Shown: positions 753 through 21,079, numbered from the stretch's first letter. The stretch: 64,000 nt of DNA from Hyalangium minutum (GCF_000737315.1 NZ_JMCB01000003.1:496001-560000), one strand, 5' to 3'. The notes: generated by a model not told the origin, from the sequence alone. Numbers and translations are program-made.

Positions 753-755
753 CCC

Positions 756-1457: not shown

Positions 1458-2080
1458 GCCATCTCCCAACCGCGCTCGTCGGATCCACACGAACCACGGC
1501 TACCCGCCGTTAGGCGGGCACCCGATAGCACACGCGTTCGCTGTTTCACAGGCGCGGTCGCCATCCTACGTGACGATCCTACTGTGCAGGTAGATAGCAC
1601 CCTGGGCGTTTTAGGCAACTTAACAGGTTGTATCTGGAGTGCTCCGCCGCTCGCTTCCCAGGCTTACGAAGCGCAGTGCCCGTCCTCTGCAACTCCTGTA
1701 AACTGCGCGTCGCGGTCCTTACGGTGCTTCTCCGGGGCTTGGCGAGCCCCGGGGCCGGAACGCGGGACTTGACTCGCGGCGCGAACTCGCGTCTCAGGTA
1801 GTACCCCCACACATCTTAGTATGAGGCGGCCCTCGACGGGCCGAGCATATGCCTCGGCCAGCTTGACACCCCAGGGGATTCCGCGGAGGCGCTCCTGGGA
1901 TGCCGAAGCCGCCTCAAGGTGGGCGGGCCCGCCCTGCCCATTCCAAGCAGAAGTGCTCAACAGGTTGATTGCACCCGCGACGGTGCCTCGATAATGTCGG
2001 GCCTCAATCAGTCATGCTTGCCTGCGGGGGCTGAGACGCGGGCCCACGCCTCTTCAGAAGCCGCCGCGCCGCCGCGCCTG

Positions 2081-3466
2081 ATGAACGTCATCGTCAAGTC
2101 ACGCACTGGTTGGTTGGCGTTGGTCTTACGGTCCAACGCCAGCACGGCAGGGTATCCGTACTACAGCCTCGAATGGCAGAAGCCCGGTTCTCCCGAGCCC
2201 TCCCGGTACTTCATCTGGCAGAACGAACTGCCCTGGCTTTGCCACAGCCTCACTGTGCTTGCGACCCGTTTGGACCTCGCTCGCTTTCGCGAAGAAGGCC
2301 TTCATCCCCTGCTGGCGCAACTCGGCCCCTCGGGTGGACCTGTGTGGTTCGCGCAGATTCAGAACGGTGAAGCGCACCTGACGCTGCGCCGCTACCGGGA
2401 TACCTGGACACCCCAGAACGGCGAGAAGACCCACACGCGCTACTTGGTCTTCGACCGCAGTGGCAGATTCCCACTCCAGATCCGGCTGCCCGCCGCCTTC
2501 GTGCGCTCGGAGGCAATGGGGGACTTCGCGCGGCAATGCATCGCGGCGCTGGGGGGGGAAGTTCAACGCCTTGAGGGTGCCTTTTCTCTGCCAGCCGGGC
2601 AGGACGCGCGCTCTCCCCGGGCCTTCTTCCAACAGGTGGCCGTGCGGCTGCGGGTGAAGGACACCTTCCGCCGCATCCTTGCCTTCCCGGGCATGCCCGT
2701 CGAGCAGGTCGAGGTCTCCATGCTGCAGGAGCCCGCGCTCGTCGCCGCCCTGAGAGCGTGCGAGCAGTCTCGCACGCCCGAGGAGGTCAGTGCCGAAATG
2801 GGACAACTGCTGGACGCACGGGCCCTCTCGGAACTGCTCGCGTGGCCGCAGCGCTACGCGCCCGAAGTCCTGCAAACGGGCTACATCCTGACGCCCGTGG
2901 AGCAGCGCAAGCTCGTGGCGGTGAAGGACCTCAAGGTGTACGCAGCGGACCCGCTGCTCACCGCGCTCCAGCCCACCCTCCCCGCGCTCACCTCCGGCCC
3001 TGAACGCCCTGTCCTGCCCCCGCAATGCACCGAGCAGCAGTTGTTGGCGGCCCGGAAGCGCGCCCTGAGCACCACGTCCCTGTCCACCGCCTTCGGGCAG
3101 GCCGCGCTGCCCAGTCCGGAGTGGGCCCAGACCATTCATCAGTTCCTGCGTCCGCCCCCCGCGCTGCGTATCCACCGTTGGCGGCTCCTCCAACTGATGA
3201 CACTGGCGGCGTGCCAATCCTGCAACCTGCCCGGGGGGCTCGAAGACGCACCGCTCCTGGATCTCCAAAGGCTCGCCCTCTTGACGCACGATGTCACAAA
3301 CCTGTTCGCGGAGGATGGGAGCGAAGACATCCGCGCCCACACCGAGGCGGTGCGTCAGCAGTGGAGAGACCTGCTCCAAGGACGTTCCACCCCCCTGCCC
3401 CTGGCCCAGCTTCCCAAGCGTGGGGAGGAGGCAGCCCCTGCGCGGCAAGGACAAGGACGAAGATGA
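2081..3466 (+). CDS. Hypothetical protein, gene 1 of the six-gene operon (start could be 1994 or 2081)
   Basis: Long open frame; its stop overlaps the next ATG (ATGA at 3463-3466). No family motif recognised. Confidence 0.72.
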   Translation: MNVIVKSRTGWLALVLRSNASTAGYPYYSLEWQKPGSPEPSRYFIWQNELPWLCHSLTVLATRLDLARFREEGLHPLLAQLGPSGGPVWFAQIQNGEAHLTLRRYRDTWTPQNGEKTHTRYLVFDRSGRFPLQIRLPAAFVRSEAMGDFARQCIAALGGEVQRLEGAFSLPAGQDARSPRAFFQQVAVRLRVKDTFRRILAFPGMPVEQVEVSMLQEPALVAALRACEQSRTPEEVSAEMGQLLDARALSELLAWPQRYAPEVLQTGYILTPVEQRKLVAVKDLKVYAADPLLTALQPTLPALTSGPERPVLPPQCTEQQLLAARKRALSTTSLSTAFGQAALPSPEWAQTIHQFLRPPPALRIHRWRLLQLMTLAACQSCNLPGGLEDAPLLDLQRLALLTHDVTNLFAEDGSEDIRAHTEAVRQQWRDLLQGRSTPLPLAQLPKRGEEAAPARQGQGRR

Positions 3467-4494
3467 ACGACTTCGCGATGCAACTCGTCGACGCCTGCAT
3501 GCGGTCCGTGGGCCGCCTCAGGCAACACCTTTCCCACCAACCCACCCAGCCTGATGCCAGCAAGATCCTCCTCACGCGCATGCGTAGGCGCCTGGGCAGC
3601 GACTACCGCCCTGGCCAGAGTCTCCCGCGCAACACCGTGGACGATCTCGTGCAGGAGGTCATTCACGGCGACGAGCACGTGGCCGGTGTGCCCGCCAAGC
3701 CCGCTGAACTGCGCGACACCTTCACCGACAAGCACCAGATCTTCATCCAGCTCGCGGATGGTTGGCGGCTCTCCGAAAGAGGGGAGATGCTGAACAAAGC
3801 GATGTTCTCCGGCTTGGAGATCCTCCAAGCCCCGAGCGACGCCCACGCGCTCCACCGCTTCGCCCACAACCACCTGTTGCTCTACCCGGAGACGTTTCCC
3901 CTGCTGCGCGCCTTTGCGCCCCCGGGCAGCGAGAAGTCCGCCCTGGACCGTTGGGCCGGCCACTTCTTCTTCTCGCGAAAGGTGAACAGCGTCACCATCG
4001 ACTACATCGCTTGGGAACTCGAACACCTGCAAATCGTCCGCAAGGGCCAGGGATTCGAGCTGTTCAGGCCCGCGCCCGCAGTCATCGCGTACAACTTCGT
4101 CGACGCCTACCTCCAGGCTTCGGACATGCGGCTCGATTACGGCGTGCCCATCCAGGATATCGTCACGCAACTCAACATGTACTTCCGCGAGGCGCGCCGG
4201 TACCTGCTCTCACCGGATTGGCAAAGGGATCTGCGGCCCTCGGGAGGCCCTCTCATGAAGCGGGAGATGGGGGACTCCCAACTGCGCCTGGAGCGCGCGG
4301 ACTTCCTGTGGCTCACGGAGCACTCGCTCGTCGAGCCCAGCTTGGTGGGGCGCGTGCTGCGCGAGATGAAGTCCTTCGCGGCCCTGCAGGCGCTGCGCGA
4401 GAAGCTCGAACCCATCCTCATCAAGAACACGCCCATCAACGAACACGATTACCTCTCGGCACTCTCTCCGGACGAGAACGAGCTTTCGCGATGA
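3463..4494 (+). CDS. Hypothetical 343-aa protein, possibly winged-helix (BrxA/DUF4007/DpdG-like position and size)
   Basis: ATGA overlaps at both ends. GWRLSERG resembles a wHTH wing. The domain call is a weak inference. Confidence 0.75.
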   Translation: MNDFAMQLVDACMRSVGRLRQHLSHQPTQPDASKILLTRMRRRLGSDYRPGQSLPRNTVDDLVQEVIHGDEHVAGVPAKPAELRDTFTDKHQIFIQLADGWRLSERGEMLNKAMFSGLEILQAPSDAHALHRFAHNHLLLYPETFPLLRAFAPPGSEKSALDRWAGHFFFSRKVNSVTIDYIAWELEHLQIVRKGQGFELFRPAPAVIAYNFVDAYLQASDMRLDYGVPIQDIVTQLNMYFREARRYLLSPDWQRDLRPSGGPLMKREMGDSQLRLERADFLWLTEHSLVEPSLVGRVLREMKSFAALQALREKLEPILIKNTPINEHDYLSALSPDENELSR

Positions 4495-7364
4495 GCTTCT
4501 TCAACTCTCCCTTCAACTACATGGCCTCGCTGCAGCAGGCGGCGAGCGAGTTCAGCCCCACCGAGACGGAACAGCTGGTCCGCGGCTACCTGGAGGACTT
4601 GAGCCGTGCGGTCTCCGAAGACTCCTTCGATCCCACCGGAGGCGTGAACGCGCTCGTCTTTGGCGAGTGGGGTCACGGCAAGAGCCAGGTCATGTACCGC
4701 ACCGCGGACCACCTGACGCGCCACCACCCGAAGGTGCTCACCGTCCGGATCATCGCGGCCCGGCTCGCTCCCCGCGACATCCTCGAGGCCGCTCTGTTCG
4801 ACCTGAAACGCCAGTCCGGCACGCATGAGGAGGCCGAAGGGCTCCACCGGTCCATGGCGGAACTGGGCGACATGGCGGATGACGATCCCCACGCCCGGAA
4901 GATCGCGGCCAGGGCCCTGGCCAGCATGGCCTCGCACACCCAGCGTCTCCACACCGCCCTGCTCTTCGATGAGGCCGCGCAGACCTCGGGCATCGACTTC
5001 CAGGAGTTCCTGCGCGAGCTCGAGCAGGCTTTCTCGTCTACGCACAGTGTCCTCCACACCATGCAGTGCCACAGCCTGGCCACCCTGGATCGGGCGCGGC
5101 AGGTGGCGAATAACCTGGGGGACTGGGCACGATCCGCCCGGCAGATCCACCTGCCGTCGCTCCAGCTGGCTCAGGCCTATGATTTCTTCCGTACGCGTTT
5201 GGCCGCGCGCACCCATGACTCGCTGCTGGCCGAGCAGCTCATCCCTCCCGGCATCGCCAAGACGCTCTGCGCCGCAGCGGGTGGTAACCCCCGGCGGATG
5301 CTGCAGTACGCATCCCAGATCTGGGAAGCCTGCCATCGCCATGGCGAGCATCGGTTCACCGGGCGCCGCGTGCTCGAGGTCTTCCGCAGTGAAGCCGGTG
5401 TGGCGGCCGGCACCAGCCTGTTCATGGAAGCCCGCTTCCGACGCATCCTCGATCTACTGCCCCAGGAGTGGGGAAGCTTTGGGCAGAAGGTCCGCCTCTT
5501 CTTGGAGCGCCGGATCCCCACTTTGCTCGGTGAGTCGGAACTGATATCCCCCATGCAGCTGGCAGCGGATCTCGGCAACGTTTCCATCGGAGAGTTGCAG
5601 AAGATCACTCGCGAGGTAGGTGGCATCCCGCTCTTCGAGACGAAGACGGACGAGTTTGACGACACCACCTACGGGCTGACACACGCCTTCCGCTCGGATC
5701 TGTGCGGTGCCTTCGGCTCTACGGGCGGGCTTGATCTCAAGCAGATCCAGATCAAACTGCTTCTCAAGCCGCGCGAGGAGCAGAACCTCATCGCCAGCGG
5801 GCTGGCCAACGTGCTGCGGCACAAGGGCTACACCCAAGTCGCGCCGAGGCTCGTCCGTCTGGGGGAGTTCCCATCCGAAGCCCACGCCCATCACCAGACG
5901 CCCATCCGGGGCTTCATCATGCAGGTTCAGATTCCGGACACCACTATTGACGTCCCGGTGCTCGTCACGGGCCTGTGCGGTGTCGCGCCCCCGTCGGCGA
6001 TGATCGAGCGCATTGCCCGGGGGCTGGCTGACCGGGAATGGTTGTTCGCCTACATGCTGTACGCCAACGAGGATCTGTTCTGGGATGACTGGCTCCACGG
6101 GGAGGCGGCCCGGCAGCTTCCAGCAGATCTGCACGAGAAGGCCTCCCGGATCCGGACGCTGAACCCTTCCGAGAAGCTCGTTTCCCCCTCGGCGGTTGAA
6201 CAGGCGCATCCGCCCGGCGTGGCGGCGGCCATTTTCTTCGCCCACCTTATTGGCGCCGGCCAGCAATACTCCGAGGGCAAGCTCCCTCCGGAGGAGATTG
6301 CCCCCATCATCGAAGGTACTGTCGCGGAGATGAACGAGGCACTCCCCCAGCTTCGGGATGTGCGTTACCTCCCCTCCGAGTCTGAGCGGAAGCTCCTGGA
6401 CAACTCCTGCTGGGACAATGCCTCGGCGGAGAACGGGCTCACCCTCAAACAGATCAGCGAGGCCACGCAGGAGAGGCTGACGGGCACCAGCCTCGAGAAC
6501 CTGCTGGGGGGCTACCTGGAGAAGCGCGGGGGCCTCTACTTCCGCAACAAGAGCGCTGGCTTCCCCATCTTCAGCGTAGTCCGCGACGTGCTGAAGGCTC
6601 GGCAGCGGTGCTCTATGGACGCGCTGATCGAGGAGGTCCGCAGCGCGGAGATCTTCGTTGGCGGCGGCGACCGGCTGCGGATCAATGTCGAATGGATCGT
6701 GGAGAAGCTCAAAACCGCAGGGTTGGCCCGGCGTGAGCAATCGGAACTGCTCTTCGTTGACCTCACCAAGGCGCTCAAGGAGAAGGACCAGAAGTACAAG
6801 TCGCAACTGCAGGTATTCACGAAGCGGATCGCCCAAATCGAGCAGTACGAATCGAGCCGCGCCGAGCCCTTGCAACGGAGCCTCGAGGACATCCGGAAGC
6901 GAAAGACGCCGGACGCGAGCCTCTCCGAACGCAGCGAACAACTCGATGAACTCCTGCTGGACCTAGAGCAACTGTCCGGACGCATCGCCGACGAAGAGCA
7001 GGCGATCGTGACCGACAAGCAGACGTACATCAACTACTTCACCGGGGAGCTCGCGGAGCTGAAGCGGCTCAGGGAAGGGCTGGCGCCAGAGTGGCAGAAC
7101 CGGGCATTCACCGAAGAGGAATACCTGGACGCCGACAACCTCTTTGAGACATTCCGGAAGAACCTCGAAACACCGGTGGGCAACAACCAGCGCAATGTCA
7201 TCATGCGCGAGCGGCGCTCCCTGCAGAATCGGATCGACGCACTGAGAGCCCGGGCCCAGGGCAAGGCCGCTGCCGCGCCCGAGGATCCATCCTCGCAGAT
7301 CGTTAACCGCATCCTGTCGAAGCAGCCGTTCGACCGGCTGGTCGTCACCGTGGAGGAAGTCTAG
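4491..7364 (+). CDS. P-loop ATPase (957 aa) with C-terminal coiled coil
   Basis: Walker A GEWGHGKS, Walker B LLFDE, AAGGNPRRMLQ AAA-like helix, heptad-rich C-terminus. Start at ATG 4491 overlapping the previous stop. Confidence 0.87.
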   Translation: MSFFNSPFNYMASLQQAASEFSPTETEQLVRGYLEDLSRAVSEDSFDPTGGVNALVFGEWGHGKSQVMYRTADHLTRHHPKVLTVRIIAARLAPRDILEAALFDLKRQSGTHEEAEGLHRSMAELGDMADDDPHARKIAARALASMASHTQRLHTALLFDEAAQTSGIDFQEFLRELEQAFSSTHSVLHTMQCHSLATLDRARQVANNLGDWARSARQIHLPSLQLAQAYDFFRTRLAARTHDSLLAEQLIPPGIAKTLCAAAGGNPRRMLQYASQIWEACHRHGEHRFTGRRVLEVFRSEAGVAAGTSLFMEARFRRILDLLPQEWGSFGQKVRLFLERRIPTLLGESELISPMQLAADLGNVSIGELQKITREVGGIPLFETKTDEFDDTTYGLTHAFRSDLCGAFGSTGGLDLKQIQIKLLLKPREEQNLIASGLANVLRHKGYTQVAPRLVRLGEFPSEAHAHHQTPIRGFIMQVQIPDTTIDVPVLVTGLCGVAPPSAMIERIARGLADREWLFAYMLYANEDLFWDDWLHGEAARQLPADLHEKASRIRTLNPSEKLVSPSAVEQAHPPGVAAAIFFAHLIGAGQQYSEGKLPPEEIAPIIEGTVAEMNEALPQLRDVRYLPSESERKLLDNSCWDNASAENGLTLKQISEATQERLTGTSLENLLGGYLEKRGGLYFRNKSAGFPIFSVVRDVLKARQRCSMDALIEEVRSAEIFVGGGDRLRINVEWIVEKLKTAGLARREQSELLFVDLTKALKEKDQKYKSQLQVFTKRIAQIEQYESSRAEPLQRSLEDIRKRKTPDASLSERSEQLDELLLDLEQLSGRIADEEQAIVTDKQTYINYFTGELAELKRLREGLAPEWQNRAFTEEEYLDADNLFETFRKNLETPVGNNQRNVIMRERRSLQNRIDALRARAQGKAAAAPEDPSSQIVNRILSKQPFDRLVVTVEEV

Positions 7365-10300
7365 ATGCGCTCGATCGGACGCGAAAAGGAGTTGGAGCGG
7401 GTACTCGCCCAGATCGCGCGGCGGGTGGATGCCCAGGGCAACCGGATCACCTCGCCAGCGGCGACCTCGATGGGCTCGCAGGTCCACATCTCCGTGGAAG
7501 CCCCTCCGCGAGGAGGCCTCTCCCTCTTCCTGGAGGACGCGAAGGAGACCCTCGCGCAAAGGCCGGGCTTGTATCCCGTGCTGGTGACCGTGCAGGACAG
7601 CTCCCGTCCTCAGGACGCGCTGCGCCTCGCACTTGAGGAAATTGCCCGGGCTGCGGGAGTCCCGCATCCCTCGGACACCACCAACCTGAGCCTCTTCCAG
7701 CTCTGCGAGCAACTCTGGGAGAGCCAGAAGCGGGTCGCCGTCCTCATGCTGGACGTCACCCAGGCGCTGGAGCAACTGCACGGCAACGAGAGCCTTCGCC
7801 AGAAGGCGTCTTCGAACGCGCTGCTGCAACGTCTGCGCATCCTCGTCAACGACATGGAGGACAAGCAGCCGACTCTCGCGGCGATCGTCGGCTGGCGCAA
7901 CGATTTCCGCGAGCGCAGCATCGAGTGGAAGGCCCAGGACGTGGAGATGCGCTACTACCCGCACATCACGCTCTGGCCCGACTTCAAGCAAGAGGACGCG
8001 TGGCCCCTGTTCGAATCCATTCTGCGCGCTCAGGGTTACACGAACATCGACGGCCACTATCCCGGCTTCTGCCGCACCGGGCTGACGGTTGGTGACATCC
8101 TCGAGGAACTGAAGCAGACGGGTGCGCACCGGGTGGATGGCCCCCTGCTTCTCTCCACGCTGAACCGAAAAAAGCCTCTGGAGCAGGACGTGGCGACAGT
8201 CCCCTCGGATCTGCTCGTGGCGCTCTGCCTGCAAGATGCCCGGATCGGCCCCTCGCATCCGCTCCACGAGAAGATCTCGTCCCCTGCGGTCAAACCGTTC
8301 GTCAATCCGGAGAGGACCGAGCAGGACGAGGTAGTCTATGTGGCTAACGAGGACCTGTACCGGGCGGCCCACGTGCTGCCAAACCGGTTTCTCATCTCCA
8401 CTGTCCGCGACTACCAGCGGCGGTTCGAGGATCGCGATCCGGAGTTCGCTCTGGAGTTGCTGGCAGGACTGCCGCCCGCGCTCACCGGCGTCGCGGCCCC
8501 GGAGGTCCCTCAGAAGCTCGGGGGCTACGCGAAGATCGCCTTCAACTTGCCGTCCGATCTCGTGCCGCCTGGGCTGAAGGAGATGCGGGTCACTGCCTAC
8601 TGCACGCTGGCCAGCGAGATCAGCAACGACCTGAAGACCGACCTCATCGCCCAGTTGAACGCCACCGAGAGTACCCCGCTTTCACGGGCGACCCAATGCG
8701 TGCTCGTGCTGCACTCCGAGGCGGGACAGGACAGCCAGCTCCACGCGGCCGTCCTGTCCTCGCCTCGGCCCGATTGGCGGATCCTCCAACTCAAAAAGGG
8801 GCGGCTCACCAAGGACGAGGCCGCAGCGCTCTGCACCATCGACATCAAGGCCGAGCAGGCCACAGAGCTCGCCTTCAAGAAGGTGGATCCTTCGCGGCAG
8901 TCCAAGGATCTCTCCACCTACCTGCAGCGCCAGATCCGGACGCGCTTCAACAGCCTGCTGGGCAAGTACCCCGCCTTGGACAGTCAAGCCTTCGACGGGC
9001 AGCACCTGCCACGGTTGATGGTGGAGAGTCACACCTTCGTGGACCTCGCCACCTCGGGGGATGACGTCTCAGAGACCGCCATCAAGGTGCTCGAAAACCT
9101 GCAGGTGGTGGAGCGCAAAACCAGGAAGGAACTGTGTTGGGCGTTCGAGAAAGACATGCTCCTCAAGAACCTGCTCGATCGGGCGTCGCACGCGGCCGGG
9201 AACTTGAGCGAGGAGATGTCGAGGCTCTACACCTTCGATCCCCGGAACTGGCCGTCCATCGCCGCCGCGCTCGCCACGGCGTATTCCGACTTTCTTGAGC
9301 CGCAGGGCTCCACCCTCCGGGAGAAGCCGCCACAGAACTCGCTCACCCAGCGCGTCCGGATCGCCTTCACCCGTCTCGATCCCCTACTCCAGGAACTGCG
9401 GGACCTGAGCGCGCAGGGCAAGGCTGTCACCCTTGAGCACGAACGCGAGGAGCTCGATTCGCAGCTCACCTCCGCGCAGAACATTTCCAGCATCGAGTTG
9501 ATCTGTGAGGAGACGCTCGCCCTCGTGGAGAAGGGAAAACGAGCCGTCGAGGAGACTCAAGAGCGCCGGGACCAGTTGGTGACACAACTTCAGAGCGACT
9601 ACAACGAACTGGAGCGACGAGCGCCCGACCCCTCGCTCTCCAATATGCGCTCGGAGCTCTCGAAGAAGGCCAAGCAGATTCTGGCCAGGCAGCCTCCCCT
9701 GCTCGCCGAACTGGAGGAGATCCAGCGCAGCTTCGAGACCTACCGGGCCAAGGCGCGCGCGGTCCAGGAGAAGCTCCAGACCAACCTCCAGGATGCCGCT
9801 CTTCTGCGCCAGCACATCCAGGCCCGCCGAACCACGCTAGAGAACCTTGAGAAGCAGGCTGCTGCGCTCGATGGAGAGGCCCATCACCGGATCCAAGAAG
9901 CGCTGAGGTCCATCCACCAACAACTCGACGAGCTCCATTCCCAGCTCGGCGATGAGAAGAAGCACCCCAGCATTCCGCCCGATGCGCGGGAGAAAGAGCT
10001 GATCACCATCCGCACGGCCCTGGACACGCTCGCCAGCCAACTGCAGGAGCGCTCCCGCTGGATGGTGGCTCCACGAAAGGCTCCTGCGCCCAGGCCTGCG
10101 ACGAGCCCTCAGCCGGCTCCCCCAAGCAGCGCCGCGCCTCAGCCCTCGGCGGGCGGGGGGATGTCCACGCAACCCTCGGCTCTTCCCCCTCAGGCGTCCC
10201 CTGCTCCTCGCGACGACACGCACCGGCCTGAAACGTCGGCGCCCCCCGTCGTGGCCGCTCCGGCCTCCGGACTCCCGAAGCAGCTTCCCTCCTCTCCGCC

Positions 10301-10607: not shown

Positions 10608-13600
10608 TGCGTCCCCTCAACGAATACACCGCCATTCGTGAGCGGGCAGGACGGATGCTCGAGGTTCTCATCGAGAAACAGCATTACGACGGGCTGTGCG
10701 CCGATCTGCTGTACGTGCTCGACGAGGAGTGCCGCCAGCGGCTCAACGCGGGAGCGAGCGAAGTCTTCGGCTCCGTCAAGAGCCTCTGGGAGCCCTTTCT
10801 GGACGCGATCCGCACCATTGCGCCGGAGATCGGCCTCACCGCCGGAGTGAGTAATGCCCGCCTCCTTCAGGAAGAACTCTTCCAGATGATCCTGCGCCGG
10901 ATGGTGAAGGAAGGAGACCTCATCTTCGCCAGCGACCGCCAGCGGGCGCGCAGCCGGGCGCTGGAAGTGGCTCACTACCTGCGTAACCTCCGCCAGCGAA
11001 CTGCCCTCAAGGAGCAGAGCGGCTTCCGCCCTCGGCTCGTCGAGATGATGAAGGTCGAGGTCCGCAAGCGGGAACGTCCTGTCCGCGCCCGCACACTCGA
11101 CGAGTTGCTGGATGCCCTGTCTGAGCTGGAGTACGAGCAGACCGCCGACCATCTCGAGGCGCTCCCGCCACTCCAGAAGTTGGAGGAGCTCAAGGAGGCA
11201 TTCGGGGCGTTCCTGCAGCGCGCCCTCCCCTCCCCTCAGTTCGCGGACTTCCAGATGCGCGCTTTCGAGCAACTCGTCACGGAGGCCTTCCTTAAGCAGA
11301 ACGCGGAGCCCAAGGCCGCCGTGATCGCCGCGGGCACGGGCTTTGGAAAGACCGAGGCCTTCCTCCTGCCCATCCTCTTCTACAGCGCCTATGCCCGGCT
11401 GCTGAAGCAGCACAACGTGCGGGAGGAGGGCGACCAGGACACCTCGGGCATCGACGCCCTGCTGCTCTATCCCCGCGTCGATCTCTGCGACAACCAAGCC
11501 GAGCGGCTCCTGGGGTACCTGTACCACCTCAACGCCGTTCTCCTCGAGAAGTTCGGCAAGGAGGCGTTGGGCGGGCCCCTGCGCCTAGCCCTCGCGCACG
11601 GCCGCATCAACGATACCTTCCGCATCCGCTGCCCGGCCTGTCTCAAGGAGGAAAAGGTCGCCGGCGTGGCCTGGACGGAGAATGACAAGAACAAGGCCTT
11701 CATCCGGCCGAAGTTCCGGGACACGGACAGGGTCGAAAGCTTCTTCTGCGATCGCAAGCTGGAGCACCAGCACGTCGCGGACATGCTCGTCTTTCAGGTG
11801 TACCGCGAATCGCGCGACGCGGATCTGTTGATCACCACCGTGGACACGCTGCACCGTCGGCTGATGGACCATCACGGCGAGGCTTCGATCTTCAAATCAC
11901 GCAAGCTGCCGCCGCGCTTCGTGGTCCTCGACGAGATGCACATCTACGAGGGACAGCACGGCGCGCACGTGGCGAACATCCTCCGCCGCTGCCGCCAGCG
12001 CATCTCCCATATGCGCCACGCCATCACAGTGCCGCCTCTCTTCATCGGGGCTTCGGCCACGGCCGGAAGCCCCGAGCAGCTAGCCGCGCGCATGTTTGGC
12101 GTGCCCTTGGACAAGATCCAGCTCATCCAACCGGGCAGCGACGAGAAGAAGACGCAGGGGCTGGAGTACTTCTTTTTCCTGCGCTCGCCGGGGAACCGAC
12201 TCGTCGAGGAGCGGCTTCCTCCCGCAGTCCTCGCGGACGAAGCCCCGGACGATGATACGCAGGACGACTTCCCCGTCCCTTCCCAGCCCCCATCCCCGAG
12301 CCACTTCGTCTCCGAGCGGGCGACGATGCTCCAGGCCGCCTTTGCGCTCCAGCACACGATGAAAGCACCGGGCCGGGTAGGGGCCAAGAGGAGGACGCTC
12401 GGCTTCGTCGACTCAGTGGACAGCGCCCAGCGTCTCGGCAGCCAACTCGATGACGCCGAGTGGCAGGACTTCGGTCAGGGAGCGATCGCGCGCAAGGGCG
12501 CACCGCCGGCGGGCCACCAGAAACCCCCGCTCTACGCCTACCGGCTGCCCGTGGGACGCCCCGGCGCGGGCTTGGCGGATCTGACCAACGCAATCCAGGC
12601 CTCGGGGGCGGAGATTTCCCGGGGCCTGGCGGCACCCTCCTCGTTCGCATTGCCACAACTCGGGGTGGGTTGCATCCGCCAGTCCTTGCGCGACTGCCAT
12701 CAACCTCCCCACCACCTCCTCGAGCGCTGCCAGCGCTACGAGCAGGGCGAGTGCTGGTTCGCCATGGCCCACTCTGGCGAGGAGGGGCTGCGTCCCATCC
12801 CCATCCAGACACACCGCTCGGGCCGCCGGGGCTGGGGAGACGCTCAGCGGCGGTGGGAGGACATCGACAAGGATCAATGGCGGCTACTCATCACCACCTC
12901 GGCGCTCGAGGTTGGCTTCGATCACCCCGAGATCATCGCGACGTGGCAGCATCATGCTCCTCCGAGCGTGGCCTCCTTCGTGCAGCGAAAGGGGCGCGGC
13001 GGACGTGGGCTGCGCGACTACCCCATCACGATGATGGTGTTGGGACCGAACGCGGATGACACCTACACCTTCCAGAACCACTTGAAGTTCGTGGACTCGG
13101 CCGACTTCAGCAACTACGTCGACGAGGAGAACCCGAGCGTGCGGATGCAGCACGTCTTCTCGGCGGTCCTGGACTGGTGCGCTTCCCAGCAAGGCTACCA
13201 ACAGGTCTACACCACGTATGAATTCGAACCGCTGTTGAAAGCCCTCCGTCAAACAGAGGTGCGCGACTGGGTCAGCGGCTGCCTCGACATGCGGAGCAAG
13301 GCGATCCACGACATCCTTACCGCGCTCCATGCGTACGTGGCGGAAGTCTGGCATGCGCCGCTCGATCCCTCCGGCAAGGAGTTCCTGGGCGGAGATTCGG
13401 TGCGGCCCAGCGATCTGTTCAAACCCACCGCCGCCCGGAAGATCGGCGTCTGGAAGGACCGGCTCCGGTCCCGCACGGACGTCGAACGCACGCGACAGTG
13501 GTTGGATGCGGCCGAACGCTTCTTCGAGGGTGGCGATAAGCGCATGCGCAACGTGGTGGACTTCTGCCAGTACGTCCCCGACGCCCTGCTCAAGAACCCG

Positions 13601-15430
13601 GATATGCACATTCCGGCCACGACGCTCTCGACGCCAGTGGGACGGTATGTAGACATGCTGGAGCGGCCCCAGGGGCGGCCGCTGCGCTGGGTTGCCCAGG
13701 AGCCCACAGAGTTCGCGCTGCGGGCATTCCTCCCCGGCGGCTTCAAGGCCCGCTACGACGGGCAACTGTGGATGGCTCCCTGGCAGCCCTCCGCCAACCT
13801 CGTGACTACGGGCAATGTCACCTGGGCGGCCACGCGCGCCCAGATCCACGAACTCTACAAGCCGGGCAATCCCATCACTCTGATCGATCTCCTCAAGGAG
13901 GCGAACCTCGAAGAGGGCACCCAGCGCCAGATTCTCTCGGCTGCGGGAGAGGACAGCGTGGTCGTGTTCCCCGCGGGCCTGGAGATCCGGCCGCTCGGCA
14001 GGCAGATGTCCCGCTCGTTCCAACTCGACGAGACAACGAAGACGATCGTCCCCACCAAGCCCCAGGGCGCCACCGGCACGTACACCCTGCTATCCCGGGA
14101 TCCGAACGTCACCCCACGCACGGTCGTCATTCCCCGGCGGAGCCAGAATCGGCGGCTCGTGGTCTCGTCTGGAACCGGGCTGCTGACGTCCATCTCCTTT
14201 CATGAGTCGTTCCGGCTCGTCGTGGCGTACTACGCCAACCTGGTCCACTGCTACCCGAAGGACGATGAGGTCCGGACAATCGTTGTGCGCTTTCAGGACG
14301 AGACGGTTTCGAAGCCGCTAGTGGCGGCCATGGAGGTACGCAGCCAGTGCGTGGAGTTCGTCATGCGCTGCCGCGAGGAACGCCTGCGCGGCTGGAGCGC
14401 GGCCCAGCGCGCCCGAGCCTTCTGGAGACGCGTCTCCTCCGAAGCGCTCGAGGTGCTCGTCGTCCGGCGGGGACTCCTGCCGAACATGTACCTGTTGCCA
14501 GGAATGATCGATCTGTTGCGTTGGGCGGAGGCCAAGCGCCGGGGCCGGGTGGGTGCCTTCTCCGAGCGCCCACCAACGGACGCGGAACTGCGCGAGGCCT
14601 TCACCCAGCCTCTTCCCGGACAGCAGGAGATGGCACGGCTTATCGTGCAAACCTCGGCGCCCCTGGCCCAGGTGCTCCAGGAGGCCGCGACGTGGACGGA
14701 CGCCCATGGCGCCCGCTTCACGCTCGCAGACAGTCTCGCGGTGGCCCTGGCACGCGCGCTGGGCAGCCATATCAACGTCTCGCCCAGGGCCCTGCGTAGG
14801 TTCGTCGACGTCCGAGGCGCGGACATCCACGTGATGCTGTACGACGACATCGACGGTGGGAGCGGCAACGCCCGGCGCATCGCCGAGGAGTTCAGCCGGT
14901 GGAGCCCGGAGCGTCTCTGGCAGGGAGTGGAGCGCGCCTTGGACTGCCCAGCTGCGGGGATGGACGCGGCAGTAGCCACGGCACTCTCCTCGAGGCTGTC
15001 TCCAGACATCCTCTCCACGATGGCCCACCGCAACCAACTCCCCGAAGAGTGGACGGCCCATCTCGCCAGCCCGGCCCGCGCCCGTCACCGGTTGCGGCAC
15101 CTGCTCGAAACCCCAGCTCTCGCGGCCTTCTACCTCTACGCCCATGAGGAATGGCGCCTGCTCCAGGAGCAACTCTCCGCTCCTCCTCCCCACTGCGCCT
15201 TCGTGGAGAGAATCCACTGCGCCCCCGCGCTCGATCCCCGCGCCGAGGCGCTGCGGCAGCAGTTCCTCCGGAGACAGGACGGGTTGGCCGAGCTCCCCGC
15301 CCGCCTGCAGGAGATGGAACCTTTGTGCGTGGCCGGCTGCCCGGAGTGCCTGACAGGGGCTCTGTTCGAGGAGGAGCGCTTCATCGATCGCACGTTTCTC
15401 CAGAAGCTGCTCACGGAGCGCACGGAATGA
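10607..15430 (+). CDS. Large SF2 DEAD/DEAH-box helicase (1607 aa) with DUF1998/MrfA-like C-terminus (DpdJ/DruE-like class)
   Basis: AGTGFGKTEAF (motif I), LLLYPR (Ia), ITTVDTLH (Ib), VVLDEMH (II), GASATAG (III), TTSALEVGFD (V), QRKGRGGR (VI), LYDDIDGGSG and C-terminal CVAGCPECL. Confidence 0.92.
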   Translation: MRPLNEYTAIRERAGRMLEVLIEKQHYDGLCADLLYVLDEECRQRLNAGASEVFGSVKSLWEPFLDAIRTIAPEIGLTAGVSNARLLQEELFQMILRRMVKEGDLIFASDRQRARSRALEVAHYLRNLRQRTALKEQSGFRPRLVEMMKVEVRKRERPVRARTLDELLDALSELEYEQTADHLEALPPLQKLEELKEAFGAFLQRALPSPQFADFQMRAFEQLVTEAFLKQNAEPKAAVIAAGTGFGKTEAFLLPILFYSAYARLLKQHNVREEGDQDTSGIDALLLYPRVDLCDNQAERLLGYLYHLNAVLLEKFGKEALGGPLRLALAHGRINDTFRIRCPACLKEEKVAGVAWTENDKNKAFIRPKFRDTDRVESFFCDRKLEHQHVADMLVFQVYRESRDADLLITTVDTLHRRLMDHHGEASIFKSRKLPPRFVVLDEMHIYEGQHGAHVANILRRCRQRISHMRHAITVPPLFIGASATAGSPEQLAARMFGVPLDKIQLIQPGSDEKKTQGLEYFFFLRSPGNRLVEERLPPAVLADEAPDDDTQDDFPVPSQPPSPSHFVSERATMLQAAFALQHTMKAPGRVGAKRRTLGFVDSVDSAQRLGSQLDDAEWQDFGQGAIARKGAPPAGHQKPPLYAYRLPVGRPGAGLADLTNAIQASGAEISRGLAAPSSFALPQLGVGCIRQSLRDCHQPPHHLLERCQRYEQGECWFAMAHSGEEGLRPIPIQTHRSGRRGWGDAQRRWEDIDKDQWRLLITTSALEVGFDHPEIIATWQHHAPPSVASFVQRKGRGGRGLRDYPITMMVLGPNADDTYTFQNHLKFVDSADFSNYVDEENPSVRMQHVFSAVLDWCASQQGYQQVYTTYEFEPLLKALRQTEVRDWVSGCLDMRSKAIHDILTALHAYVAEVWHAPLDPSGKEFLGGDSVRPSDLFKPTAARKIGVWKDRLRSRTDVERTRQWLDAAERFFEGGDKRMRNVVDFCQYVPDALLKNPDMHIPATTLSTPVGRYVDMLERPQGRPLRWVAQEPTEFALRAFLPGGFKARYDGQLWMAPWQPSANLVTTGNVTWAATRAQIHELYKPGNPITLIDLLKEANLEEGTQRQILSAAGEDSVVVFPAGLEIRPLGRQMSRSFQLDETTKTIVPTKPQGATGTYTLLSRDPNVTPRTVVIPRRSQNRRLVVSSGTGLLTSISFHESFRLVVAYYANLVHCYPKDDEVRTIVVRFQDETVSKPLVAAMEVRSQCVEFVMRCREERLRGWSAAQRARAFWRRVSSEALEVLVVRRGLLPNMYLLPGMIDLLRWAEAKRRGRVGAFSERPPTDAELREAFTQPLPGQQEMARLIVQTSAPLAQVLQEAATWTDAHGARFTLADSLAVALARALGSHINVSPRALRRFVDVRGADIHVMLYDDIDGGSGNARRIAEEFSRWSPERLWQGVERALDCPAAGMDAAVATALSSRLSPDILSTMAHRNQLPEEWTAHLASPARARHRLRHLLETPALAAFYLYAHEEWRLLQEQLSAPPPHCAFVERIHCAPALDPRAEALRQQFLRRQDGLAELPARLQEMEPLCVAGCPECLTGALFEEERFIDRTFLQKLLTERTE

Positions 15431-18400
15431 CTGGAACACTGCGCCGCTCGCTCGAGGAGTTGCACCGTTCGAGCCGGCAGGATCTGCCCTCCCTGTGCAA
15501 TGTGCTCGTCCAGATCAACGATACCCCCGTGTGGGTGTCCCAGCAGGGTGGGCGCTGGCAGCTCCGGGTGAGGAGCCTCTCCAACACGGTCAATGCGTTC
15601 ATCGCCGTGCATAAGGCTCCCGGGGAAACCGGGCTGGACTTGAAGTACACGAAGACGTCGGCCTCCCTGCTCGCGATGTTCGACGAGGTACCACTGCGGC
15701 GGCTCTTGTCCCCGGGAGAGATCGCGCTCGTCCAGGCCGAGCCCCGGCACAGCAGTGACGGCGAACTCTTCCTCAACGTTCAGGCTATCCTCTTGCTGAG
15801 GCCGTTCCAGACCTTCGGCCGCATCCAGGTGGACTACGAGTCGCGCTGCGCCCGCAAGAGCTATCTCTCGGTCACCAAGGGTGTTGGCACCAAACCCCCG
15901 GACACGCTCCACATGGGCAGCGTCGGAGGCATGGTGGCTCACGAGGTCTTCTCCCGTCTGGCCCAGCAGGAGAACCGGCGGGCAGATACCCCAGAGGAGA
16001 TTTTTGCCCACGCACTGGGCAGTGAGACCGTGGGCTCGCTCGTCTTCCTCGGGCTGAAATCGCCCGAGGACATGAAGGCCGCGCTGCGCCCGGGCCTGGA
16101 CGTCCAAGAGGTCATCACCCGCTCGGAAGCGCTGCGCCGGTTTCTGGCGTCCGATCAATGGGCTCCCGAGAGCGATGTGCTGAACAATGGCATCGTCGTG
16201 GCCCCGGATCTCCTCGGGCGCAAGCATGTCGCGGAGCTGAAGTACATCAGGCCCGGCTCGGATTACGACGACGCCGACAAGCAGCGCGGGCAGATCGAAG
16301 CCTACCTCGCTTGGGCGATGGTCGAGTACGGGCTTCCTGAGGTCTGCTCGGAATGGAAGGGGCTGCTCGTGCAGCTCCACCCGCAGGTGGACGAGGCGCA
16401 GCGGGTGCGGACGCTGCAAGCACAACCCGAGCTCATCGGGGGACGCCTGCTCAAACGGCACCGCCTGCTCGCACTCACCAACGGCGCGTGGCTGCCTGCT
16501 CCCAACCCGGACGAGTGCAACCAGTGCGAGTTCAGCGACAAGGCACTGCGCGGAGAGGAGCAACAAGCCGCGCCCGCGTGCACTTTCCACTGCCAGATGG
16601 AACGCGGCTGGGAGTGCTACACGCCTCCTCCGGGCCGTGCGTGCCCGCTGATCGACAAGTGCGATCAGTACAACCGCTTCGTCGCGTTCGAGCGCTTGGA
16701 TCAGTTCAACCGGCTCCGGGCCGATCTGCTCGACGAGGAGGAAGAACGGGCGGCCATCTCCCAGATCATTGAGGCGCTGACAGGCCGGGAGGGGGGCGAG
16801 GCCACGGGGCTCGTGCTTGGAGGGTTGAAGGTACTGGAGCACAAGCCAAGCACCTTGAAGGTGGAACTCCCGCCGCGCCTGCAGGTGCTCGACTTCGCGC
16901 ACCGGGACGAAGTCTTCGAGTTGTTGTGCGAGGGTCGGGCGGCCGGGCTCGTCCGCATGCACAAGCGCAGGGGCCGGGACCAGATGACGCTCTCCGAAAT
17001 CCACTCTTCGATGCGTCCGCTCGCCACTGGCACGCTCGTCGCCTTGAGGGCGGTGCCCGAGTGGCGGGTGAGCCCCCGTGATCAATTGAGGTACCTGGAC
17101 CTTGTGCAGCGCCATGACGAGCCTCCGATGAGCCTGCGGTCCGGAGCCCGCCGCGATCGGCTCCCGGCGTGCACGGAGTTGGCGTCCATCGAGCAGCTCT
17201 CCCCCGAGGCCCAACTGGTGCTGATCGACGCTCCCGGTCGCTCGGCGCTGCGCACTGCGGCGCAGAAGGTGCTCGATTGGATGCGCTCCAGCGGCACCGG
17301 ACGCATCCTGGTGGTGGATGCCATTGAAGGGCTCCAGCCCGCCCAGGAGTTCGCGGATCTGTCGGACCTGTCGTTGTCCGAGGCATTCCATGCCGACACT
17401 CTGCCGGTGGCGGAGCGCCTGCGCGCGCTCGTGGATGGCATCCAAGGCAAGCGCGTCTGGTGCGTTCCCCGCGAGCAACTCACCGGTATCCGGCTGAGCA
17501 CATTGGTGGAGTCCTTGGGGCGTTTCTCTGACGTCATCATCATCGGCGCAGAGACGTTCCCGCTGCTGGCCATCCACCGCTGCCTGGCGCTGGGCAAGCG
17601 CGTCACGCTGGTAGGTCAGGCCTCCGCCAGCGGCCCACGCGCGGAGAGCCTCCAGGCCCGGCAGTCGGAACTCTACCAGAACACGCTGCGGCTGCTTCTC
17701 GAGGCGGGACCCTCCATCTTCCCAGCCCAGGTGGAGCAGGTGGAGATCGTGCGCCTGCCGGCCGTGCACGGCTGCGCCGGAAGTGACCGCATCTTTAAGT
17801 TCAAGGGGATCCAGCGGGTGAGCCGACTGGAGCCCCATCCCTGCGCGGCTCCCGAGGAAGGACCGGAAGCGAGTACCCAGGCTCGGGTGCAAGGGGAGAT
17901 CGAGCTCACGCGGTTCGTGCCGCTCAGTCTTCATCAGGTGCAGAAACGCCACGTCATCGTGGAGGTGCTTCCTTCCGAACGGAACTCCGTGCGCCACCTC
18001 AAGGAACTGCTCAAGGGCATCACGGCGCGAAGCATCGAGCGGATGAACATCATGGCGAAGGGGCATCTGGACACGGCGCTCCTGGGAGAACGTGTCCGTA
18101 TCGTGGACATCCAACAGTCCACGGTTTCGGCGTCGCCGGGCACCGAGCACCGCGTGACGCTGCGCGTGCCCCATGACCGGTTCCCTTTCATCCAGGAGCG
18201 GCTGTTCACCAGCCGCACCGAAGTGGAGGAACTGCTCGCCTTCGCGAAGCAACGCCCCCAAGAGCAGTTTCACGTGACTTCGCCCTTCTTCGCGCAGTGC
18301 CTGCTGATAAGCCAGCTGGCGATGGAGAAGGAGATCCCTAACGTGATCGTGGTTCCCTTGGAGCACCTGGGGTGGAAGCGGCCTGGGGGGGACCGGAACC

Positions 18401-18576
18401 TGCTGGTCAGCACCGTCGTCACCCGGTCGAATCCGGGCTACCCCTATCCCATGAATGACCTGGGCCGACTCATCGAGTTGTTCACCGGGGACTATGCGGA
18501 GGTGCACCTCTTCTCCTCGAAGGAGGCCTTGACGCACCACCCCGTTCTCCTCCGCCTGACCAGCCCGCGGCTCTAA
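15427..18576 (+). CDS. Dna2/Cas4-like PD-(D/E)xK nuclease with Cys cluster, fused to a degenerate SF1-helicase-like region (1049 aa)
   Basis: YESRCARKSYL, GGMVAHEVF, APDLLG...AELKY, CNQCEF plus further Cys residues. Later IDAPGRS, VIIIGAET, VTLVGQ and VTSPFFAQ fall where SF1 motifs would but lack the catalytic residues. ATGA overlap at 15427. Confidence 0.78.
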   Translation: MTGTLRRSLEELHRSSRQDLPSLCNVLVQINDTPVWVSQQGGRWQLRVRSLSNTVNAFIAVHKAPGETGLDLKYTKTSASLLAMFDEVPLRRLLSPGEIALVQAEPRHSSDGELFLNVQAILLLRPFQTFGRIQVDYESRCARKSYLSVTKGVGTKPPDTLHMGSVGGMVAHEVFSRLAQQENRRADTPEEIFAHALGSETVGSLVFLGLKSPEDMKAALRPGLDVQEVITRSEALRRFLASDQWAPESDVLNNGIVVAPDLLGRKHVAELKYIRPGSDYDDADKQRGQIEAYLAWAMVEYGLPEVCSEWKGLLVQLHPQVDEAQRVRTLQAQPELIGGRLLKRHRLLALTNGAWLPAPNPDECNQCEFSDKALRGEEQQAAPACTFHCQMERGWECYTPPPGRACPLIDKCDQYNRFVAFERLDQFNRLRADLLDEEEERAAISQIIEALTGREGGEATGLVLGGLKVLEHKPSTLKVELPPRLQVLDFAHRDEVFELLCEGRAAGLVRMHKRRGRDQMTLSEIHSSMRPLATGTLVALRAVPEWRVSPRDQLRYLDLVQRHDEPPMSLRSGARRDRLPACTELASIEQLSPEAQLVLIDAPGRSALRTAAQKVLDWMRSSGTGRILVVDAIEGLQPAQEFADLSDLSLSEAFHADTLPVAERLRALVDGIQGKRVWCVPREQLTGIRLSTLVESLGRFSDVIIIGAETFPLLAIHRCLALGKRVTLVGQASASGPRAESLQARQSELYQNTLRLLLEAGPSIFPAQVEQVEIVRLPAVHGCAGSDRIFKFKGIQRVSRLEPHPCAAPEEGPEASTQARVQGEIELTRFVPLSLHQVQKRHVIVEVLPSERNSVRHLKELLKGITARSIERMNIMAKGHLDTALLGERVRIVDIQQSTVSASPGTEHRVTLRVPHDRFPFIQERLFTSRTEVEELLAFAKQRPQEQFHVTSPFFAQCLLISQLAMEKEIPNVIVVPLEHLGWKRPGGDRNLLVSTVVTRSNPGYPYPMNDLGRLIELFTGDYAEVHLFSSKEALTHHPVLLRLTSPRL

Positions 18577-21002: not shown

Positions 21003-21079
<77 letters not shown>

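Follow-up and report, generated by a model that had tools for sequence, protein, structure and literature searches.

Positions 2,081 to 18,576 of a 64,000-nucleotide stretch of the genome of Hyalangium minutum DSM 14724 (PMC5441343; NZ_JMCB01000003.1:496001-560000; the whole stretch is referred to as the window) carry six consecutive plus-strand genes, g1 to g6 (Table 1), which probably encode the effector (restriction) half of a Dpd-type 7-deazaguanine restriction-modification system. We infer this function because linkage to dpd and que genes recurs across phyla in differing arrangements, because DpdJ is the best named match of g5, because g3, g5, and g6 each keep their catalytic residues invariant throughout the family, and because the folds fit, with g6 resembling Dna2, g3 resembling Cdc6 and origin recognition complex (ORC) proteins in a BrxC layout, and g4 being an apparently dead paralogue of g3. 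Further support comes from the island character of the locus, i.e., its GC content at third codon positions (GC3), a transposase remnant, a tRNA-Pro gene, and a Myxococcus xanthus copy beside a cyclic-oligonucleotide-based anti-phage signalling system (CBASS), and from the restriction phenotype given by the canonical genes dpdD-K (PMC10164549).

The six genes form a conserved, tightly coupled multi-protein cassette. All coordinates and the ATGA, TGATG, and TAG-ATG junctions given by an earlier reading of this DNA without database searches (the sequence-only reading) were reproduced, with overlaps of 4, 4, 0, 1, and 4 nt from g1 to g6. The stop/start codon overlaps suggest co-translation in fixed proportions, and a stoichiometric complex of the six proteins may be envisaged from this translational coupling. 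Domain, conservation, and fold searches agree with the earlier domain guesses (ATPase, dead ATPase, superfamily 2 (SF2) helicase with a DUF1998 end, Dna2-like nuclease), and, as had been stated, methylase, PglZ, phospholipase D (PLD), and SNF2 domains are absent from the six proteins (PADLOC, Pfam). The defence function proposed from this composition of helicase, nuclease, and ATPases fits as well, and the cassette sits in a horizontally acquired island.

The statement that the operon matches no nameable system was mistaken, since the genes that give the system its name are found a short way beyond the reported interval. This interval began at 2081 and overlooked queC and queE at 111-1457; left of the window edge, on the same contig, queE is followed by queD, dpdC, dpdA, and dpdB in this order. 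Judged by family matches, queC/D/E and dpdA/B/C beside g1-g6 constitute the complete modification half of a Dpd system, and the six-gene operon occupies the position of dpdD-K. Due to the presence of these genes the locus is assigned to the Dpd-type 7-deazaguanine modification systems, and the missing methylase is explained by a self-mark that consists in the exchange of a base instead of the addition of a methyl group. In the system of Salmonella Montevideo, 7-cyano-7-deazaguanine (preQ0) is inserted into DNA by DpdA and DpdB and converted by DpdC to dADG (2'-deoxy-7-amido-7-deazaguanosine), and dpdD-K confer the restriction phenotype (PMC10164549, PMC5699537).

GC3 is 0.76-0.86 in the que genes and the six operon genes (111-18576; 0.76 in queE) compared to 0.94-0.95 in the housekeeping genes nearby (HU and pheT among them; 21179-41586). 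Due to this match with the operon, the que genes are considered part of the island and not housekeeping queuosine genes of the host. The GC3 signature suggests that an island of approximately 25 kb was acquired as a unit.

The order and sizes of the six genes recur in Myxococcus, Corallococcus, metagenome-assembled genomes (MAGs) of Pirellulaceae, Xenobiia, and Planctomycetota (one each), and several metagenome contigs; g5 identities go down to 28%. In agreement with the single system proposed by the sequence-only reading, gene-neighbourhood analysis found the homologues to co-occur instead of scattering. The stop/start overlaps are kept in a Logan contig (L001), and almost all of them in a MAG locus (L006). 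For g5, approximately 46 full-length relatives (about 1580 aa, 27-48% identity) were observed in Planctomycetota, Verrucomicrobiota, Xenobiia, an Asgard archaeon, and haloarchaea, and a metagenome scan with the g5 alignment added 79 loci. A probe with the g4 alignment retrieved only C. exercitus among the GTDB genomes and nothing in the JGI metagenomes, g4 being too divergent. Six-frame open reading frames (ORFs) of the loci were screened with family hidden Markov models (HMMs), and those loci that carry g5 and g6 were counted (n=58), many of them with truncated flanks. dpd or que genes were detected in the fetched flanks of 30 of these 58 loci (metagenomes, MAGs) and, where the flank reached 12 kb or more, in 20 out of 27 loci (4 out of 6 with a fused and 16 out of 21 with a split helicase gene).

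The arrangement of these neighbours varies. In a JGI contig (g4 32% identity), a helix-turn-helix gene precedes cassette genes of 460, 338, 959, 1077, 1590, and 473+ aa, and queC, a radical SAM gene, and folE2 are divergent, as in the window. The Pirellulaceae MAG encodes proteins of 458, 334, 953, 1043, 1612, and 1025 aa followed by DpdB, DpdB, DpdA, DpdB, and DpdC; the Xenobiia MAG carries a DpdC-DpdA fusion, the six genes, and DpdB-DpdA-DpdB; the Planctomycetota MAG carries FolE2, DpdA, the six genes, DpdC, DpdB, and a DpdB-DpdA fusion. In a Hodarchaeota MAG contig, the last three cassette genes occur with a DndB-like gene and a member of the YhhQ/Vut_1 preQ0 transporter family. Since the dpd genes are located upstream, downstream, divergent, or fused in different loci, the association points to a link in function instead of inherited synteny. 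In three MAG loci (L006, L008, and L009), two to three DpdB paralogues flank DpdA, and the DpdC-DpdA and DpdB-DpdA fusions comprise 677 and 775 aa, respectively. Two DpdA copies per locus might correspond to two target motifs or two deazaguanine derivatives.

Three clades were distinguished. Clade A (myxobacteria, the Pirellulaceae MAG, the JGI contig, and locus L011) and clade B (Xenobiia, Planctomycetota, Hodarchaeota, and others) share the six-gene form with a fused g5. Clade C lacks g4 and is composed of a g2 of about 265 aa, a g3 of about 1120 aa, a g5 split into about 920 and 710 aa, and a g6 of about 1065 aa; many of its loci originate from hypersaline samples. Some clade C loci (L039, L051, and L078) encode an extra YprA helicase of 1820-1870 aa with DruE1 as the best PADLOC match. 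L039 also holds a 478-aa protein with an LmuA/Avs1a-like nuclease domain.

Several observations weigh against an effector function in a Dpd system. No dpd or que genes were found in the fetched flanks of the three close myxobacterial copies. In case of M. xanthus CP017169, 5 kb upstream and approximately 0.8 kb downstream were seen, with a transposase and a CBASS operon (DncV-like, E2/ThiF, JAB) that abuts the cassette on the upstream side and an integrase fragment downstream; for Corallococcus exercitus the flank comprises the upstream side only; in L001 a methyltransferase and ResIII pair is situated upstream, and the contig ends 116 bp after g6. Therefore the cassette may work without a mark, or the dpd genes are located elsewhere or off the contig. 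Furthermore, a modified-base reader domain was not recognisable in the six proteins (PADLOC, Pfam, NCBIfam), and the inter-domain arrangement of the g3 model is uncertain, with a predicted template modelling score (pTM) of only 0.44.

The remaining points on this side concern the canonical restriction proteins. Compared to DpdD-I and DpdK, g1, g2, g3, g4, and g6 gave no PADLOC match up to E = 10 and no NCBIfam match up to E = 0.01. Our canonical reference was plasmid NZ_CP086409 of E. cloacae, annotated with dpdE, F, G, H, J, K, and D and, at the place of DpdI, an unnamed gene of 282 aa. The best hhalign probability of the family HMMs of g1-g4 and g6 to its Dpd proteins was 1.4%, at the Walker A motif of DpdH, in a comparison of profiles with single sequences and without secondary structure, which leaves room for very remote homology. 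At the sequence level, homology of these five proteins to canonical DpdD-I and DpdK was rejected by searches with the family HMMs as well as by hhalign; due to these negative results the correspondence to the canonical restriction genes is positional and architectural and not a demonstrable homology.

The copies without dpd genes would be accounted for by an autonomous, mark-independent defence system of a Druantia/Lamassu-like type (helicase, nuclease, coiled-coil ATPase) that shares islands with dpd genes and senses DNA ends, replication intermediates, or phage proteins. Two of the three copies are indeed in typical defence-island company, one beside CBASS and one beside a Type III-like methyltransferase and ResIII pair; 28 of the 58 surveyed loci lack dpd and que genes in the fetched DNA, and the missing reader domain would be expected as well. 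Nevertheless we consider this explanation unlikely, since the adjacency of dpdA/B/C recurs in at least four phyla and in archaea with varied gene orders that argue for selection, since most of the dpd-less loci are truncated contigs and those with long flanks predominantly carry dpd or que genes, and since the que genes share the atypical GC3 of the operon, the nearest named helicase of which is DpdJ.

The Logan copy L001 raises a further alternative, i.e., a modification-agnostic restriction engine that is coupled to differing self-marks, to Dpd in Hyalangium and planctomycetes and to an N6/N4 methyltransferase in L001. Here, a 955-aa N6_N4 methyltransferase and a ResIII helicase are located divergently upstream of g1, at the position of queC and queE. 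This is a single case, the two genes resemble a common Type III-like restriction-modification system, and downstream dpd genes are possible beyond the end of the contig, so that such an engine is scarcely to be expected.

For the effector function in a Dpd system the helicase g5 provides the closest connection at the protein level. Its match to the PADLOC DpdJ model (6.6e-68) covers residues 93-527 only, and its NCBIfam DpdJ score (201.6 bits compared to a cut-off of 800) is below the equivalog level, for which reason g5 is referred to as DpdJ-like and not as DpdJ. To E. cloacae DpdJ it is 26% identical in the helicase core only (BLASTP; residues 203-647 and 760-859), and it matches YprA (PDB 6ZNP) with 8e-15. 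Among Pfam domains DEAD and Helicase_C were matched, and MZB weakly. Across 40 homologues, the helicase motifs GTGFGKT at 243-249 (Walker A), D442-E443-x-H445 (DExH), and QRKGRGGR at 793-800 (motif VI) are invariant, as are two internal cysteine clusters (C342/C345/C381 and C689/C697/C708/C716) and the intact four-cysteine site of the C-terminal DUF1998/MZB module (C1447/C1574/C1578/C1581). With the DExH SF2 core and this C-terminal module, g5 belongs to the YprA/MrfA family of SF2 helicases, of which DpdJ is the closest named relative.

g6 was modelled with AlphaFold2 at a mean predicted local distance difference test score (pLDDT) of 85.2 and a pTM of 0.85. The top Foldseek matches of this model are the mouse Dna2 structures 5EAN, 5EAX, and 5EAW (E 1e-24, template modelling (TM) score 0.55, full length), followed by the superfamily 1B (SF1B) helicases Upf1, Ighmbp2, and Setx. 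An N-terminal RecB/Cas4-type PD-(D/E)xK nuclease with cysteine clusters precedes an SF1B helicase-fold domain, i.e., g6 combines in one chain a PD-(D/E)xK nuclease with Fe-S cysteines and the 1A/2A domains as known for Dna2. Invariant in 35 homologues are H172, E248, D261, K272, Q289, and Y293 as well as the cysteines C141, C364, C367, C385, C389, C397, C406, and C412; E270, the acidic residue of ExK, is known from the window sequence and does not belong to the invariant set. As in Dna2, Cas4, and AddB, the RecB-type residues D261, E270-x-K272, and Q289-x3-Y293 are present, and as in Dna2 and Cas4, a cysteine before the nuclease core and a CxxC after it occupy the 4Fe-4S ligand positions. Five further invariant cysteines suggest a candidate second metal site. 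In contrast to Dna2, to which identity is 12-13% and no sequence-level match was found in the PDB sequence search, g6 is encoded in a defence operon and its family lacks the helicase Walker A: in none of the 35 homologues is the lysine conserved, the window protein has DAPGRS at this site, and an active ATPase is not indicated. Homologues of g6 match Pfam AAA_12, and one from clade C matches PADLOC Cas4. The family is rare, with 75 representatives among 1.84 billion. From model and motifs, g6 is predicted to be the effector nuclease.

Due to their best studied relatives, YprA/MrfA and Dna2 (matches to PDB 6ZNP and 5EAN), g5 and g6 could also be regarded as repair proteins. In this case the cassette would aid modification or genome maintenance, by opening DNA for DpdA, which depends on an ATPase and possibly on DNA being opened locally (PMC10164549), or by repairing abasic or nicked sites after failed exchange, comparable to the part that MrfA (YprA) plays in the repair of mitomycin damage and Dna2 in the processing of flaps and ends. 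This explanation is very unlikely. Salmonella DpdA/B/C suffice for modification in vitro and in vivo, and it is the large helicase and nuclease genes that give restriction (PMC10164549); the YprA defence branch including DpdJ is separate from the repair branch (PMC12458937); and the cassette is found in mobile islands together with transposases and other defence genes.

g3 is predicted, from motifs and model, to be an active AAA+ ATPase of the ORC/Cdc6 clade. Walker A (G58-x2-G61-x-G63-K64-S), Walker B (D160-E161), and a GGNPR sensor (264-268) are invariant. In the AlphaFold2 model (pLDDT 83), the first approximately 400 residues match archaeal Cdc6 1FNN (E 2e-7, target-normalised TM score (TMt) 0.57), ORC subunits, RuvB, and TnsC as top Foldseek matches; a winged helix-turn-helix (wHTH)-like domain, an alpha+beta domain, a wHTH, and a coiled coil at about 758-922 follow, the latter resembling the coils of SMC, Rad50, and myosin. 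A PDB sequence search with the g2 and g3 profiles yielded only coiled-coil matches for g3 and none for g2. AAA+ base and lid, Walker A/B, sensor arginine, wHTH, and a C-terminal coiled coil are all present in g3, and the comparison with BrxC was made via its published description only: an ORC/Cdc6 AAA+ ATPase, wHTH, alpha+beta, wHTH, and a coiled-coil extension (10.1101/2025.10.09.681413). A 2025 preprint equates BrxC with DpdH-I. The domain order of g3 is shared with BrxC/PglY of bacteriophage exclusion (BREX) systems and with DpdH, as is an inactive ATPase partner (g4 here, BrxB there; 10.1101/2025.10.09.681413). Unlike in these systems, g3 and g4 lack a sequence match to the PADLOC BrxC and DpdH models, no BrxC structure was matched, and the inactive partner, a paralogue of full length, brings a coiled coil of its own.

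The relationship of g4 to g3 was established by hhalign, family against family, with a probability of 98% (E 2e-13, 713 columns). Its Walker A lysine is gone in all members, which show PPRGGLS in clade A and GxRRxGRS in clade B, and the Walker B aspartate is not followed by a glutamate. By these motifs g4 is a catalytically dead paralogue of g3. Weak matches were obtained to AAA_22 and to SMC coiled coils, and the Xenobiia homologue has a TFIIE_alpha/MarR wHTH. The tail of g4 consists of a coiled coil, a Pro/Ala/Ser-rich stretch of approximately 140 residues (about 900-1040; window 10062-10490), and a small conserved C-terminal domain. Inside the Pro/Ala/Ser-rich stretch, which is likely a flexible tether, 63 nt are deleted in frame in the Logan homologue. 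g4 is very rare (5 clusters among 5.8 billion proteins). In M. xanthus CP017169, the annotation splits g4 (L002 10001-13242) into genes of 680 and 342 aa, due to a 1-nt deletion in a C8 homopolymer compared to the Hyalangium and Logan copies. We did not use this as a sign that restriction without modification is lost, since decay, phase variation, or a long-read homopolymer error may be the cause.

Relatives of g1 and g2 outside the cassette were not found in PADLOC, Pfam, NCBIfam, or PHROGs. g1 occurs in clade A loci only, and its position in clade B is taken by a different protein of about 385 aa; a relationship of the two was rejected, as the clade A profile misses the clade B protein and the hhalign probability is 0.6%. 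g2 is homologous across clades A, B, and C and is always located directly before g3, as DpdG is before DpdH. Even with a 15-sequence profile, g2 showed no family or PDB match, and the hhalign comparison to DpdG was negative.

Combining these assignments, it is tempting to speculate on the following order of events. By orthology, QueD, QueE, and QueC would make preQ0, DpdA together with the ATPase DpdB would exchange DNA guanine for it, and DpdC would convert it to the amide (dADG). g3 may pair with its dead paralogue g4 in a DNA-bound, ATP-driven scaffold that judges whether DNA is marked, with g2 and perhaps g1 joining at the DNA; g1 and g2 would be adaptor or specificity subunits. On unmarked DNA this scaffold would license g5 as an SF2 translocase to unwind or translocate and to feed single strand to g6, a putative Fe-S nuclease which would degrade the invader. 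The helicase-fold domain of g6, with its ATPase lost, probably acts only as a single-strand-binding clamp or tunnel.

Considering the canonical Dpd system (dpdA-K, Salmonella Montevideo type; Thiaville et al. 2016; PMC5699537, PMC10164549), the window locus shares with it the adjoining DpdA, DpdB, and DpdC orthologues and queC/D/E, the occurrence in mobile islands, and a large divergent or convergent operon that encodes a YprA-family helicase of about 1500 aa, a large ATPase after a protein of about 300 aa, and a nuclease. By position, g2 before g3 resembles DpdG before DpdH, g3/g4 resemble the BrxC-like DpdH(I), g5 resembles DpdJ, and g6 stands in place of the PLD nuclease DpdK. In contrast, counterparts to DpdD, DpdE (SNF2), and DpdF are missing, the nuclease is Dna2-like and not PLD, and an active/dead AAA+ pair replaces DpdH(I). 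The C-terminal half of g5 is unrelated to that of canonical DpdJ, and g5 keeps the DUF1998 four-cysteine site which canonical DpdJ has lost according to a 2025 YprA preprint (PMC12458937); the preprint also names deeper-branching Dpd-like systems in which DUF1998 is kept. Only g5 matches a published PADLOC model, so that the six proteins do not all match one published system, in line with the possible novelty claimed by the sequence-only reading. Except for g3 and g4 with weak matches, g1, g2, g3, g4, and g6 match no PADLOC, Pfam, NCBIfam, or PHROGs model above noise, and no paper describing the bacterial six-gene form was found.

A close published description is that of BRIGADE (Bell et al. 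2025 preprint; PMC12458937), Dpd-like systems which are defined by a pair of YprA-like helicases, one or both of the ARMADA-like type, and which were reported from halophilic archaea only. In these, 7-deazaguanine biosynthesis and insertion genes are adjacent, a small PLD nuclease is usual, and a DNA2-like nuclease often occurs in type I (PMC12458937). With this preprint, the former statement that no described system of this kind includes a Dna2-like gene is outdated. With its split g5, g3, g6, origin from hypersaline samples, and, in some loci, an extra DruE/ARMADA-like helicase of 1830 aa, clade C looks like haloarchaeal BRIGADE type I, as set against the published description. The window locus shares with BRIGADE the adjoining 7-deazaguanine biosynthesis and insertion genes. 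It differs in that window and flanks contain one fused YprA helicase (g5) instead of two, in the extra dead ATPase g4 and g1, and in its myxobacterial origin with relatives in Planctomycetota, Xenobiia, and Verrucomicrobiota. PLD is absent (PADLOC, Pfam), and a Dna2-like nuclease, g6, is present, which may correspond to the DNA2-like protein of the preprint. The supplements of PMC12458937, one of which was covered only in part, did not show the accessions of the g5 homologues, so that their absence is not proven.

The YprA-family helicase with DUF1998 is also the core of the systems DISARM and Druantia, and the split of g5 in clade C mirrors DrmA/DrmB. In contrast to these systems, DrmC PLD, DrmD SNF2, DrmMI/MII methylase, DruA-D, and DruH are absent, and in contrast to BREX, PglZ, PglX, BrxA, and BrxL. 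g5 matches the PADLOC models of DrmA, DruE, and BrxH at the helicase core only, and nothing else in the operon assigns it to BREX, DISARM, or Druantia.

Taken together, the system is Dpd-like but combines a BrxC-like pair of an active and a dead ATPase with a nuclease of Dna2-like type; it is outside the current defence-system models and only partly anticipated by the 2025 preprint. We regard it as evenly balanced whether these loci constitute a distinct class, 'type II Dpd', which would have arisen independently of dpdD-K and would consist of g2, the active BrxC-like ATPase, its dead paralogue, the YprA helicase, and the Dna2-like nuclease, with the ORC-like pair sensing 7-deazaguanine. As part of the same proposal, the class would span Myxococcota, Planctomycetota, Verrucomicrobiota, Xenobiia, and Asgard archaea, with the split-helicase form in haloarchaea, and dpd islands regarded as reduced would be complete. 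The 2016 review noted that dpdEFJK 'have a more variable distribution' (PMC5699537), and the GATOR-GC preprint describes dpd islands of Myxococcota and Verrucomicrobiota as having 'reduced restriction operon content' (10.1101/2025.02.24.639861). Our observations suggest that these islands carry the alternative cassette instead. If 'type II Dpd' holds true, islands with a 'reduced restriction operon' (GATOR-GC, 10.1101/2025.02.24.639861) would be complete systems with an unrecognised effector set. The cassette also corrects published censuses, in which dpd islands of myxobacteria and Verrucomicrobiota are counted as poor in restriction genes or devoid of them (10.1101/2025.02.24.639861). Defence annotation misses the cassette because five of its six proteins are without a model in PADLOC, NCBIfam, and Pfam.

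The way in which unmodified DNA is restricted by Dpd systems was called unknown in the 2016 review (PMC5699537), and we found no later paper giving a mechanism. A second, non-homologous effector set on the same DpdA/B/C marking offers a natural comparison, in which features common to both sets (YprA helicase, ORC-clade ATPase with a small partner, and nuclease) should be those needed to read the mark. The invariant PD-(D/E)xK residues of g6 represent a direct mutational handle that is absent from the canonical system, and the common g2, g3, g5, and g6 families tie the bacterial loci to haloarchaeal BRIGADE. Further Dpd effector variants probably exist. On the Caulobacter sp. S6 plasmid NZ_CP073079 (L092 25100-40759), dpdB-dpdA-dpdB-queE-queD-queC is followed by another non-canonical gene set, which encodes a 736-aa helicase-related protein, hypothetical proteins of 299, 1093, and 230 aa, a 2102-aa AAA-domain protein, and a 762-aa hypothetical protein, none of which is annotated as DpdD-K.

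Table 1. Features of the H. minutum locus. Positions are those of the window; positions preceded by L003 refer to the own coordinates of H. minutum locus DNA that extends past the left edge of the window.
Feature	Position	Strand	Remarks
g1	2081-3466	+	461 aa from ATG; 515 aa if GTG at 1919 is used
g2	3463-4494	+	343 aa; ATGA overlap with g1
g3	4491-7364	+	957 aa; ATGA overlap with g2
g4	7365-10607	+	1080 aa; TAG then ATG, 0 nt gap after g3
g5	10607-15430	+	1607 aa; TGATG, 1-nt overlap with g4
g6	15427-18576	+	1049 aa; ATGA overlap with g5
queE, 7-carboxy-7-deazaguanine synthase (radical SAM)	111-752	-	NCBIfam TIGR04508 queE_Cx14CxxC 331.5 bits (cut-off 240); Pfam Radical_SAM
queC, 7-cyano-7-deazaguanine (preQ0) synthase	756-1457	-	Pfam QueC 3e-73; NCBIfam TIGR00364 198.9 bits (cut-off 150.3)
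Divergent intergenic region queC/g1	1458-2080		623 bp; without a gene having a family match
dpdC (preQ0 to ADG)	L003 11200-11991		PADLOC DpdC 1.2e-52; no NCBIfam model matched
dpdA, TGT-like DNA transglycosylase	L003 11988-13274		about 3 kb left of the window; NCBIfam NF041059 574 bits (cut-off 200); PADLOC 2e-178
dpdB, DGQHR/ParB-like ATPase	L003 13313-14470		NCBIfam NF041060 468 bits (cut-off 300); PADLOC 1.5e-144
DDE_5/IS701-like transposase remnant	18737-19500	-	Pfam DDE_5 1e-12, DDE_Tnp_1 1e-4; directly downstream of g6
nSTAND1 NTPase-domain gene	19600-20823	+	nSTAND1 1e-55; opens with a Ser/Thr-kinase-like motif (KPSNVLV...DFGL)
tRNA-Pro(GGG)	21003-21079	-	after the nSTAND1 gene; HU and pheT next

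By codon-position GC, all six operon frames fit coding (GC3 0.80-0.86, GC2 0.40-0.49). Since GC content in the window is 64-71%, long spurious ORFs are common, and an antisense ORF of 1454 aa at 15136-19500 was judged by codon-position GC to be a shadow. For g1, the ATG at 2081 is supported because conservation with four homologues begins exactly at the MNV/MNI of this start, further upstream residues being variable; the NCBI annotation of g1 is shorter (374 aa).

queC most likely starts at the ATG at 1457 and is divergent from g1. The intergenic region between them presumably holds the promoters of both halves. A sigma-70 consensus scan of this region yielded nothing, the consensus not being informative for a myxobacterium, and a terminator scan was uninformative. 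No Rfam family, preQ1 riboswitch or other RNA, was matched in this region, and the repeats inside it are trivial.

At the right border of the island, the nSTAND1 gene looks 5'-truncated by insertion because its kinase-like motif starts right after the transposase remnant. The tRNA-Pro gene was rejected as integration site, as no repeat of the tRNA 3' end is present at the left island border. In the M. xanthus cassette copy, DDE_5 genes are located directly upstream of g1, and the cassette may travel with the DDE_5/IS701-like insertion sequence family. On the far side of dpdB, left of the window, a 1766-aa Pkinase-AAA_16-GAF-HATPase_c protein is encoded (L003 14687-19987). With kinase motifs at both ends, the island might have been inserted into or beside a kinase-STAND gene family.

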